From the NCBI GenBank assembly GCA_020891255.1, contig BQFW01000013.1, positions 2,596,026-2,660,025 of the forward strand: a stretch of 64,000 bases of DNA, in the 5' to 3' direction. Within the stretch, counting starts at the first letter, position 1. Each line of letters opens with the position of its first letter. Positions 39,325 through 46,476 of the stretch are shown here, piece after piece. The notes beneath the pieces are model-generated. The model made no database searches, was not told the origin of the DNA, and saw nothing but the letters and a program-made list of their open reading frames with translations. This stretch comes from Entomortierella parvispora E1425 (Eukaryota > Fungi > Mortierellomycota). The position numbers were made by a program, and so were the translations under genes.

Positions 39325-39995
39325 GGGCGAGACAGGAACACAGGAAAGAGTAGGATAGGTAATGGTTTTGTTCGCAAAGGTCATGCATGGCGTTGTGTAC
39401 GGACTTTTGAGACTGAGATGCGAGCGGGGTCCGCCTTGGGTCTTTGAGAAGCTACAGGCTATGCGAGGGCGCTGGACTGCTTCTTGCTACGACCTCTCCA
39501 CTTCCTGTGGTGGTGGTGCTGGATTTGAATTGTTGCTTTCGTTGCTCTGTGGGTCCATGAGGGACGCGTAGGCTATGCGAGGGCGCTGGACTGTCCCTCC
39601 ATATGACCCTGCCACCATGGTTCAGAGCTATTCTCTTGAATTCTTGAATGTGGTGGTGTGCTGCAATTCGAGCAATATATTCTCCATCAGACTCGTGGGT
39701 CCATGAGGGTGAGCAGACAAGGTTGTGAATGCTGTCCCCCTCCATATGACCTCATCCATTTCTCAGGTTCACTCCTCGCTGGGAAGAGCAGGGATCTATA
39801 TCGCGTCCGCAAGAGATCAACTCCTTGGGTCCATGAGAGGCCACAGGCTATGCGAGGGCGCTGGACTACTTCTTGCTATGACCTCACCATTCTTGGTGGT
39901 GCTGTTGATCTTGAGCTGTTGCGAGTTGATTGCTCGTTGGATCCATGAAAGACGCATAGGCTATGCGAGGGCGCTGGACTGTCTTTCCATATGAT
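39325..39995 (-). repeat. Dispersed repeat, right copy, about 1.6 tandem units of about 389 bp
   Basis: GGCTATGCGAGGGCGCTGGACT is exact at 39457, 39571, 39846 and 39959. Confidence 0.88.
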
Positions 39996-41449
39996 CTCTC
40001 TATGGGCGAGGCTTACACCCTCTGCTTATGGTGGCGTTGCAATTGATGCTGTTGTCGTCTTCAGGGATGGCATTGGCTATGGTGATCAGAAGTCTTCGCT
40101 CAGCTGCGGTTGTTTTCACGACTGGGTGATTGGGACCACCGTGCTGTGCGGGTTAATAGCATCAATGGGGCTGTACGGTTATGTTTGGCTATTCCGTTCA
40201 CTAACCATTACTCTTTTTTAGGTAGGAATTTCGGCGTTGGGTCTCTTGATGGAGATGGCTGCTCTATTTCACTTGGGTTTGGCGCTCAGGATTATCGGAA
40301 GCACTCCATTGGACTTGTTGACGTGCTGTTTGTTGCAACGGTATCCCTCGACCTCTGAAGAAACGGTGAGCTAGTCGCTTGTAGTGGATGGTGAGTAGAG
40401 TCGACCGCCTGTGCAGTTGTGTCGTAGTGGATTTACATCTCTTGTATTCTTACATGTAACGAAAGGAATAAAGTCCTAGCTGCCACTGTACCTTGCGATC
40501 CCTTCTTGTACAGTGCACATCGTCGGTCTCGTAGAATCCTTGCATTTAGCCCCATGTCCCATTGGTAGTTACTCTTTAGCAGAGACGCCGAACACTCCTT
40601 CCTCTTTCCATTGTGCAGATCGATTACAGGTTGAATTGATTGCTCATAGCGCGTTTATTATTGAAGGCAGACGATAGTTCTCTCCACCTCTTTCACTTCT
40701 CTCTCCACCTTCTCTTCCCTCTCTATCCCCTCCTCTCTCCCTTCCATTTCATGGTAGTATTAATGGTATCTTATTATTTATTATAACCACGGAGTATAAT
40801 ATATACCATACCTTCACGCCTCTCAAGATTGTTACAGAGATCCCTATAGGAGTGTTGCAGTATCCTAGCTGTGCGAATTGTCTCTTGTTCCTGCCAAAAA
40901 TCATCTTTTTTTCGGTAGACCTTCCATTGTTTTTGGAGTTGAAGGCCTGTCTGATGAGCACAAAGTGCTCGCTGGCGATCATTCGGGGATGACTATATAG
41001 GCCTGCAGATGATGAAACTCTTGCTTCTTTCCAACCCCACGAAAGAACTCTCGCATCGAAATCTGCACGTGCCGTGGAGGTAAAGTATTGCACCTGCGCG
41101 AACCTCTCACATAAAACGAGTCGCTGAGCCAGGTTGATGGGTGACAAAACAAGATCTTGCCAGAACCTCATCTGCCTCGACGGGAATCATGCCAATCCCA
41201 ACGCACTGAAGTAATGGGCTGGTTTGAAAGCAAGCACAACAAAAACAAACAATTTGTGGGTGCCAAAATAACAATCAGAATCAGACCATCATCGACGCGG
41301 CACAGTCTACAAGCAAGTGAGCGGGTGAAAGAGACAAAGCGAGACAGAGAGCGACGGACTGGGAGAGTGAGAGTGAGAGAAAGCGAAGAGACAGAGAGAG
41401 TCAAGAGCAGAGAGAGAGTGTGTGAGAGAGACAGGGTGAGAGTGACTGA

Positions 41450-41780
41450 GGCAGAGATTGAGTGAGTGCCTTTTGGAGAATAATGCGTCCCTGAACTCGC
41501 CGTCTGTCTCCCTCCTTTCTCTCTTCCTTGACATCTCTCAACACTCAACTCATTTCTTGCATCTAACTTGCCTCGTCTATTGCATCCCTCTCGTCTCTTG
41601 CACGCTTGCATCCAACTCACCAACTCATCTCTTGTGTCCCTCGACTCTCTCGCCGTTCTTGTATCCTGCATTCCACAACTGTTGTATCCTTCCCTTCCCT
41701 CTCTTGTCTCCTGCATCTCTCTCGTCTCTTGGATTCCTCTTCTTTTTTGCATCTCTCTCTCTCGTCTCTTGCGTTGCTGT
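41450..41780. repeat. Pyrimidine-rich 'tcttgcatc' subtelomeric satellite
   Basis: Same motif family as 48820-49430 and 61990-62480. Confidence 0.7.
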
Positions 41781-41802
41781 TGGAAAAAATACATGTATTT
41801 AC

Positions 41803-43245
41803 TTAACGCTGACTTCTCATTGCCAGAAATGTGGCCATTCCAGAGAACACTAGTAAAAGACTACAGGCGCTCGAGTACTGCGCTAAATTTGAGTTAGGAA
41901 AGTAACCCTGCATATCGCCCATAGACATGGTCATATTGACCGGATTTGGAGGAGTACTGCTGGCAAGGTCGCTGGACTGCATATCTTGAAAGCCCATGGC
42001 ACAGGTCACTAAGCCCACTGCATAGACAGACTTGCCCAGGAAGCCATGGAATTGTCTAAATACACGCTTGTGCTCTGCGGTCTGTTTCTTGCGGGCGATG
42101 TGAACGTGGAACCCTGCCAAGATTTGGAGGGTCCAGAGGAGTAAAAAGACTATCCCGGTCCATGAATGGGCGCTGTAGAGCGTAAAGAATGGAAAAACGA
42201 CTGGTTGAGGCGAGAGTTTCTTGTAGTAGACAATGGCGCAGAGTCCTCCGACGGCACAGATAAGTCCCAAAAGATGGCAAGCGACGTGGTAATATCTATC
42301 ACCAAAAAAAAAATAACATTAAATATTTGCGAAGGAATGTTTACATTGTCCAAAAATACGCGTGATGATCGATCGTACTTGATGAGGGTGCGATTCTTGG
42401 TTAAGAAACCGATCAGCGGCGAGGAATAGGCTAGGAGGGCCTCCTGTGTAAAAACCACAATGAAGAGAGACATGAGGAGAGCGTGCCAACCAAACAGGTT
42501 CGCCTCCTGGAAGCCAATACCGCCCTCGGCCTGATAGATCCATAAGAAGAGGATGATCAAGAAGATGACGGCGATAAAACGTGGCAGTATCGATCGAGTA
42601 AACGCATAGGGGGTTCTTGAGGGTTTCGGTTCCACTTCGGCGTCGATTTGACTGATTTTGCCGCCATCATAGTCAGTGTGTCCTTGTTTGCCAAAGCACA
42701 GGAATCCAATGAACGATCCTCCGACAGCAGAGAGCAGCAGGGATGCGTTGAAAGTCATGACGATCAGCATGAGGACCCAGCCAAGGAGGAGCTCGAATGC
42801 TCCCAGAGCTGCCAAAGGCAGTCGTTCCTTGTAAATTTGAAAGCGCGAAAGACTAACGCCTTGCTGGGCGCATTCATTGGTATGCTTTTTGTAATTTTCT
42901 AATGTGTATAATATATCTCACTATTAGTTAGTTGGATCCATAGAGTTTGTTTCGAGAAAAAGAAAAGGTTTTCAAGAGCAGTATTTCACCTTGCAAGCTG
43001 AAAACATAGTTCGAGACAGCAACACGTAGAGTAGCGAGCGCAACGGTAAAGACGATGGTGCCGAAATATCCCGCTGCGCTGGAGATCATCCACGATCTGA
43101 AAAGAATGTTATCTCCTAGGCCAAAGTGCAAGAACTGGTTGCAAGCAGAGAAGGGCTTAGTTGTCATCCTACAAACAATTATACGATTGTGCAAAAGCAA
43201 GGCACCTACCATCGAGCCCATTGTTGTGGATCCATTCATGTCCAT
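41803..43245 (-). CDS. Ctr copper transporter-cytochrome b561 fusion protein, 397 aa
   Basis: Exons 43245-43210, 43134-42990, 42898-42379, 42295-41803 (1194 nt, in frame). Ctr part: MDMNGSTTMGSM|FLHFG..DNILF..W, LMLIVMTFN (MxxxM), GSFIG (GxxxG). b561 part: GWH, YYH, SAHSWTG and FHGFLG. Confidence 0.88.
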
Positions 43246-45896: not shown

Positions 45897-46476
45897 TCAG
45901 TGAAAAAAACCTCGCCTTCGACCAAAGCACAGGACTCCAATGACCGATCCTCCGACAGCAGCGAGCAGCAGGGATGCGTTGAAAGTCATGACGATCAGCA
46001 TGAGGACCCAGCCAAGGAGGAGCTCGAATGCTTTCAGAGCTGCCAAAGGCAGTCGTTCCTTGTAAATTTGAAAGCGCGAAAGACTAACGCCTTGCTGGGC
46101 GCATTCATTGGTATGCTTTTTGTAATTTTCTAATGTGTATAATATATCTCACTATTAGTTAGTTGGATCCATAGAGTTTGTTTCGAGAAAAAGAAAAGGT
46201 TTTCAAGAGCAGTATTTCACCTTGCAAGCTGAAAACATAGTTCGAGACAGCAACACGTAGAGTAGCGAGCGCAACGGTAAAGACGATGGTGCCGAAATAT
46301 CCCGCTGCGCTGGAGATCATCCACGATCTGAAAAGAATGTTATCTCCTAGGCCAAAGTGCAAGAACTGGTTGCAAGCAGAGAAGGGCTTAGTTGTCATCC
46401 TACAAACAATTATACGATTGTGCAAAAGCAAGGCACCTACCATCGAGCCCATTGTTGTGGATCCATTCATGTCCAT
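45897..46476 (-). CDS. Stand-alone Ctr copper transporter, 137 aa, ending RRRGFFH
   Basis: Exons 46476-46441, 46365-46221, 46129-45897 (414 nt). MxxxM and GxxxG are intact; it has its own stop codon. Confidence 0.85.

Follow-up and report, generated by a model that had tools for sequence, protein, structure and literature searches.

The methionine-rich segment MTMSMGDM lies between the last two helices of the cytochrome b561 domain of a Ctr-b561 fusion protein encoded in the window (the whole 64,000-nucleotide stretch of Entomortierella parvispora E1425 DNA analysed here). Comparison of related sequences shows that it is a recurring trait of a b561 clade, existing without fusion to the copper transporter, and not an addition made for this fusion. 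It is somewhat probable, in our assessment, that a flexible, Met-rich and probably N-glycosylated arm on this Ctr-partnered clade captures Cu(I) after Cu(II) reduction and passes it to Ctr.

A single minus-strand gene (41803-43245) encodes a Ctr copper transporter followed by a cytochrome b561 domain (Table 1). In Pfam searches, the last exon matched Cytochrom_B561 (E 3.6e-16; 60.1 bits versus a cut-off of 23) and the two upstream exons matched Ctr (39.1 bits for exon 2 and 24.7 bits for exon 1). In addition to the profile match, the features of PF04145 membership include MLIVM (MxxxM) in TM2, GSFIG (GxxxG) in TM3 and the stretch MGSM-FLHFGLGDN, which supplies the Met found about 20 residues before TM1 in this family. 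The heme-ligating His residues of the b561 domain are distributed one each on TM2 to TM5, namely FGWH in exon 2 and H3, H43 and H83 in exon 3; in the clade alignment H43 and H83 are invariant and the H3 column is conserved. The protein genuinely belongs to both PF03188 and PF04145, and a look-up of exon 3 in the ESM Atlas returned generic b561 clusters only. Translation of 41803-42294 (minus strand) contains QDMQSSDLASSTPPNPVNMTMSMGDMQGYFPNSNLAQYSS and remains open, reading through GFQDMQSSDLASSTPPNPVNMTMSMGDMQGYFPNSNLAQYSS, up to the stop codon. The fusion is independent of splice prediction and is not a splicing artefact, because exon 2 alone spans both domains, with a linker of about 40 amino acids between Ctr TM3 and b561 TM1 that lies in uninterrupted frame and has no hydrophobic segment. 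Splice sites were based on GT..AG ends, reading frame and colinearity with annotated orthologs.

Table 1. Features of the Ctr-b561 gene and its surroundings (positions in the window; residues numbered within exon 3).
Feature	Position	Strand	Basis
First exon, MDMNGSTTMGSM: Ctr ectodomain Mets motif and N-G-S sequon	43210..43245	-	translation
Probable 75-nt GT..AG intron	43135..43209	-	homology to L001 intron; in frame if retained
Exon with Ctr TM1, FLHFGLGDNILFRSW... through TM1	42990..43134	-	Pfam, translation
Intron	42899-42989	-	gene model
Exon 2: Ctr TM2, TM3, cytosolic linker, b561 TM1-TM2 and first His	42379..42898	-	
MLIVM in Ctr TM2	42756-42770	-	translation
Intron	42296-42378	-	gene model
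Last exon (exon 3): b561 TM3-TM6 and stop; His H3, H43, H83	41803..42295	-	
Whole b561 TM5-TM6 loop, Q103-S142, predicted extracytosolic	41869..41988	-	
QDMQSSDL, clade-defining motif, outer end of TM5	41965..41988	-	alignment
N-M-T N-glycosylation sequon, overlapping first Met of cluster	41929..41937	-	translation
MTMSMGDM Met cluster, residues 121-128, containing M-x-M-x-x-M	41911..41934	-	
GYFPNS, conserved distal loop anchor; Y131 and S135 nearly invariant	41890..41907	-	alignment
Stand-alone Ctr paralog, about 3 kb upstream of fused gene	45897..46476	-	sequence comparison

The stand-alone Ctr paralog ends 8 residues after TM3. Over its first 85 codons it matches the fused gene at 100% identity, falling to 91.5% over the Ctr part of the next exon; the intron after these 85 codons also looks identical to that of the fused copy. 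The 5' identity of the two genes suggests, from their sequences, a recent gene conversion or a partial 5' duplication. The same arrangement of a stand-alone Ctr and a fused gene is present in a relative, L001, where Met positions 1, 3, 9 and 12 of the first exon recur in the stand-alone Ctr and where the homologous first intron is required, its retention leading to a stop. An alternative intron of 41 nt after the first 12 codons of the window's gene would introduce a stop and was rejected; what fits is the 75-nt intron with a homologue in L001. Elsewhere in the neighbourhood, the region downstream of the stop codon (41300-41800) holds a GA-rich tract (about 41330-41460; gagagtgagag units) and, after it, a CT-rich tract (about 41500-41790) built of repeated units resembling ctcgtctcttgca; together the two could represent 3' UTR, repeated DNA or a low-complexity pair in inverted orientation. 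Overlapping open reading frames at 39360-39960 repeat the peptide pattern QAMRGRWT.SCYDL, the repetition of which suggests a tandem DNA repeat of about 100-150 bp.

The Met cluster reads exactly on the minus-strand translation, with M121 at 41934-41932 and M128 at 41913-41911, and it lies between the helix bearing the fourth conserved His (H83) and the final hydrophobic helix, where the first-pass annotation had placed it. The loop as a whole contains no K/R, three D/E, five Met and one sequon. It is bounded by the QDMQSSDL motif, in which D104, M105, Q106, S108 and L110 are invariant in 34 aligned sequences, and by the GYFPNS anchor, with the variable Met-rich insert between them; the Met arm begins just seven residues past the outer site described below. 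At least four Met within eight residues occurred in 1.2% of shuffled exon 3 sequences and in 2.2% of sequences shuffled from the pooled composition, which weakly indicates that the cluster, taken as a single sequence, is moderately unlikely by chance. Its spacing is that of a Ctr-type Mets motif (at least three Met, one to two residues apart, in a disordered extracytosolic segment), the location being predicted. In the N-terminus of human Ctr1, the M-x-M-x-x-M arrangement is described as a Met-only motif selective for Cu(I)/Ag(I) (PMC9117721).

The first-pass annotation had also put this loop on the extracytosolic face, on the same side as the Ctr N-terminal Mets, and all topology indicators agree on this prediction. 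Ctr proteins have the N-terminus outside and the C-terminus in the cytosol, and b561 proteins have both termini in the cytosol (PMC6437178, PMC10691727); with three plus six helices and no hydrophobic segment in the linker, the TM5-TM6 loop would therefore lie outside together with the Ctr N-terminus. Exactly nine helices are present in the AlphaFold (AF2) model of the complete fused homolog P0049 (mean pLDDT 81), on which the fold test was run in place of the window's own joined protein. In this model the TM5-TM6 loop is a low-confidence coil (pLDDT about 57-60), and the b561 half superposes on 4o7g (TM 0.81) and 5zle (TM 0.79). In searches, P0035, P0118 and P0049 stood in for the full-length window protein, and the exons were searched separately. 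The window's protein has 21 K+R on predicted cytosolic segments versus 6 on predicted outer ones, a positive-inside pattern, and the N-M-T sequon of the loop likewise points to the outer side. Its non-membrane Mets are confined to the N-terminus (6) and the TM5-TM6 loop (5).

Annotated orthologs from Entomortierella chlamydospora and Mortierella spp. are 72-75% identical, contain both Pfam domains (81 bits for b561 and 60 bits for Ctr in full-length orthologs) and are named "hypothetical protein". KAG0016088.1 and KAF9376221.1 (Entomortierella, Mortierella) are colinear Ctr+b561 proteins with NMTMSMEDMQGY, and the splice junctions of the gene model reproduce the colinear sequence of the annotated orthologs. 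The stretch N-M-T-M-x-M-x-x-M-Q-G-Y is kept in four of five Mortierellaceae sequences, the fifth having an extra NMT unit, and all four cluster Mets are retained in the fused orthologs of this family.

Beyond the Mortierellaceae, exon 3 served as query in a word-index search and the junction exon in an exhaustive HMMER search; together these yielded 65 clade sequences, corresponding to 64 distinct TM5-TM6 loops including that of the window. The clade is recognised by two elements: D-M-Q-x-S-x-L, which is invariant and placed where TM5 ends on the outer side, and G-Y-x-P-x-S, an anchor that precedes TM6; the stretch between the two loop anchors ranges from 7 to 75 residues and is unalignable between lineages. 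Counting sequences and not independent events, Met accounts for 220 of 1827 residues (12.0%) in the TM5-TM6 loops versus 506 of 15328 (3.3%) in the rest of the same proteins, and for 1.6%, 3.3%, 1.6% and 2.4% of residues in the four other inter-helix loops. Four or more Met are found in 29 of the 64 distinct loops and MxMxxM or MxxMxM in 19, about half of the clade having one Met or none in this loop. The Met enrichment across the family is clearly non-random. Met positions are kept only among close relatives (72-85% identical overall), and across lineages only the composition recurs. Most long clade loops carry N-x-S/T sequons.

The nearest known b561 counterparts are Dcytb/CYBRD1 (PDB 5zle) and Arabidopsis CYB561B (4o6y/4o7g), with sequence matches at E 3.7e-5 and 1.1e-4; they share the b561 fold of six helices and two hemes, the four His ligands, an extracytosolic reductase site and an acidic residue at H4+21 beside the outer heme propionate. 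In Dcytb this residue is Glu180, which hydrogen-bonds the propionate, and Phe184 and His108 form the ascorbate/metal site (PMC10691727). D104 of the window's protein sits at H4+21, equivalent to Glu180. The window's b561 has, however, neither the His at H2+22 nor the Phe at H4+25 of a Dcytb-type site: a phmmer alignment sets Pro31 opposite Dcytb His108, counting H2+22 from H3 gives Lys25, and H4+25 is Ser108, a Ser that is invariant in the clade. With H4+25 a Ser and no His aligned with His108, the outer site is built differently from that of Dcytb and, as judged from these alignments, is not of the Dcytb type. The clade thus differs from Dcytb in having no equivalents of the metal ligand His108 and the ascorbate-stacking Phe184, and from both Dcytb and CYB561B in its own DMQ.S.L motif, its Met-rich TM5-TM6 insert and its fusion to, or clustering with, Ctr. 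Structures of STEAP1 (E about 0.2) and bacterial NOX (E about 0.9-1.3) gave only weak fold matches to the P0049 model.

Linkage of the clade to Ctr is frequent but not universal. Fusions were confirmed by Pfam for P0035, P0042, P0043 (Chromulina nebulosa), P0049, P0061, P0066, P0086 and P0092, and by ORF context for L004 and the P0032 contig. They comprise the Mortierellaceae, a stramenopile-type group with the chrysophyte Chromulina nebulosa and MMETSP transcripts, and the unplaced P0049, P0061, P0086 and P0092. In a quick, unrooted maximum likelihood tree of 48 b561 domains the fused members are scattered, and well-supported branches force at least four changes, in either direction, between the fused and unfused states. 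In the chytrid Podochytrium, four Ctr and two b561 genes lie within about 5 kb, including two divergent head-to-head pairs. At this locus (Podochytrium sp. JEL0797, JADGJG010000104.1, 832-5762) the two divergent Ctr/b561 pairs are accompanied by two extra Ctr copies, and the Ctr at 832-1362, missing from the called genes, was found by tblastn. No Ctr was found nearby at four of the nine loci with flanking DNA. The stramenopile-type fusions (P0042, P0043, P0066/P0120, P0038, P0046, P0056, P0057, P0072 and P0075) have a longer conserved TM3-TM1 linker, FVGYWVGD..FCD...GG..G..R.ALC.P, which is absent from the Mortierellaceae fusion and may reflect a separate fusion event or an additional element associated with the membrane, which might bear on topology.

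Ctr1 moves Cu(I) through Met rings (PMC6437178), and the cupric reductase activity of Dcytb, itself a b561, is reviewed in PMC4425144. Dcytb reduces Fe(III) too. On the basis of these precedents and of the features described above, we infer that the Met arm may be a Cu(I) capture site on a cupric reductase dedicated to Ctr. A cytosolic donor would supply electrons that cross both hemes, and Cu(II) would be reduced at the outer face, beside the invariant motif ending TM5. The adjoining flexible M-x-M-x-M-x-x-M arm would bind the Cu(I) product by its thioethers, as the MxMxxM of Ctr1 does (PMC9117721). Such binding would limit re-oxidation and loss of Cu(I), and ligand exchange would hand the ion to the Met-rich Ctr ectodomain and then to the MxxxM filter. 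Because some clade members lack it, the insert probably serves as an accessory that raises affinity without being essential, by analogy with the distal Mets motifs of Ctr; a Ctr-b561 unit can do without it, as the fused P0061, P0086, P0092 and P0029 show. The substrate could also be iron instead of copper.

Arrangements resembling the proposed arm are found in several copper proteins. The ectodomain Mets motifs of Ctr1 and Ctr3 (MxM, MxxM, MxMxxM) are extracytosolic, disordered and Met-only, often lie beside N-x-S/T sequons, bind Cu(I) for delivery to the MxxxM pore. An MxMxxM of this kind is present in the window's loop and the Ctr N-terminus of the same protein reads MDMNGSTTMGSM, whereas the cluster itself is carried by the reductase domain, in an internal inter-helix loop and not at the transporter N-terminus. 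In CueO, PcoC/CopC and CusF, a flexible Met-rich segment by the active site holds Cu(I) in an oxidising compartment. The likeness of these proteins to the window's loop would be one of analogy, their folds being unrelated and their hosts bacterial, and CueO oxidises Cu(I) whereas the window's protein would produce it.

The first-pass annotation had taken the Mets as a sign that the fusion is adapted, which would imply that the cluster was inserted after, and because of, the joining to Ctr. The retention of the four Mets in the Mortierellaceae fits such a history, as does the distribution of the tri-Met motif among long loops, present in 9 of 10 fused entries (which reduce to about four independent fused lineages) versus 14 of 39 others. 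Conservation among fused orthologs holds within the Mortierellaceae and fails in the fused P0061, P0086, P0092 and P0029/L004, the loops of which are short and have no Met; the insert is missing in three or four fused lineages, with Met-less short loops in at least three. Nor are the Mets specific to fused proteins, since comparison with unfused homologs revealed loops that are equally rich or richer in Met. Gene calls on metagenome contigs can shorten fusions, P0028 being a truncated call of the fused P0061, and free status was accepted only with an upstream in-frame stop or opposite-strand neighbours. The free-standing P0041, P0011 and P0006, each found on an mRNA-like contig where an in-frame stop precedes the ATG, contain 21 Met in 75 loop residues, 8 in 31 and 7 in 30, respectively, and the two unfused b561 genes of Podochytrium sp. 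JEL0797, on the opposite strand from their Ctr neighbours, have the loop ANATMSMSGMEMAGY. A free b561 with no Ctr within 5 kb (L010) shares an intron position with the window's gene, which appears to predate, or to be independent of, the fusion and points to a b561 ancestry older than it. The intron of this free gene (the gene being L010 5314-6283; GCA_025450795.1, JANRHI010011352.1) lies at ..LK|Y.., as does the last intron of the window's fused gene. An insertion driven by fusion is, on this evidence, most improbable.

The clade-wide Cu(I) capture favoured here has also to be set against readings in which the loop serves otherwise. It is unlikely that the insert is a fast-evolving, low-complexity glycosylated spacer without metal function, its Mets having arisen by expansion of ATG-ACN/ATG-TCN codon repeats in an unconstrained loop. 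Low-complexity expansion could indeed yield a recurrent Met composition, repeat-like NMT units being present in P0001, P0022 and P0041, and the unalignable, length-variable loop is modelled with low confidence and is dispensed with by many members. However, enrichment of one rare residue recurs in many clusters of less than 50% identity, and only in the TM5-TM6 loop; M-x-M and N-x-T/S are likewise the style of the Ctr ectodomains in the fused proteins (e.g. MNMDMNMSQSGM), and genomic links tie the clade to a Cu(I) transporter. A metal-binding loop that captures the substrate before reduction, or that senses copper to gate the reductase or the transporter, with no relay of product, is decidedly unlikely: thioethers favour Cu(I) over Cu(II), and inspection of the sequence found His or ATCUN-type Cu(II) ligands to be absent from the window's TM5-TM6 loop. 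Acidic residues do stand among the Mets (GDM, EDM, MDEMMMM), and Ctr ectodomains have also been proposed to modulate permeation (PMC9889885). The location of the loop next to the outer heme end of TM5 would suit a sacrificial antioxidant shield or redox buffer, which would guard the outer heme site from Cu(I)/O2 radicals without any transfer. Surface Mets near redox centres are known sinks for reactive oxygen species. Coordination is nevertheless favoured by the regularity of the M-x-M and M-x-x-M spacing and by the resemblance to Ctr ectodomains, and no Met sulfoxide reductase is known on the extracytosolic face, so that a purely protective role appears highly improbable.

Ctr takes only Cu(I), whereas environmental copper is Cu(II). 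The accepted reducers of Cu(II) ahead of Ctr uptake are Fre1/Fre2 (NOX family) and STEAP in yeast and animals; these belong to other protein families and are not fused to Ctr. To our knowledge, a reductase feeding Ctr is known only for a few model organisms, with Fre in yeast and STEAP/Dcytb as candidates in animals. No description of the Ctr-b561 fusion, the clade motif or the Met-rich loop was found in the literature on b561 cupric reductases and on copper uptake in Mortierella and diatoms. As a tentative and wider proposal, the DMQ.S.L clade may be composed of unrecognised, dedicated cupric reductases, the natural partners of Ctr in early-diverging fungi, stramenopiles and other protists, which would have undergone several independent fusions and in which the Met-rich ectoloop would be a Cu(I) relay convergent with the Ctr ectodomain. 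If true, this would show which enzymes reduce copper for Ctr where the Fre/STEAP paradigm does not apply. With its repeated fusion to or divergent pairing with Ctr, and with a Ctr-style Met cluster near its outer heme, the clade offers a natural experiment on the coupling of reduction and import and on the protection of Cu(I) between these steps, and the fused Mortierella-type protein a compact, single-polypeptide system in which to study this coupling.
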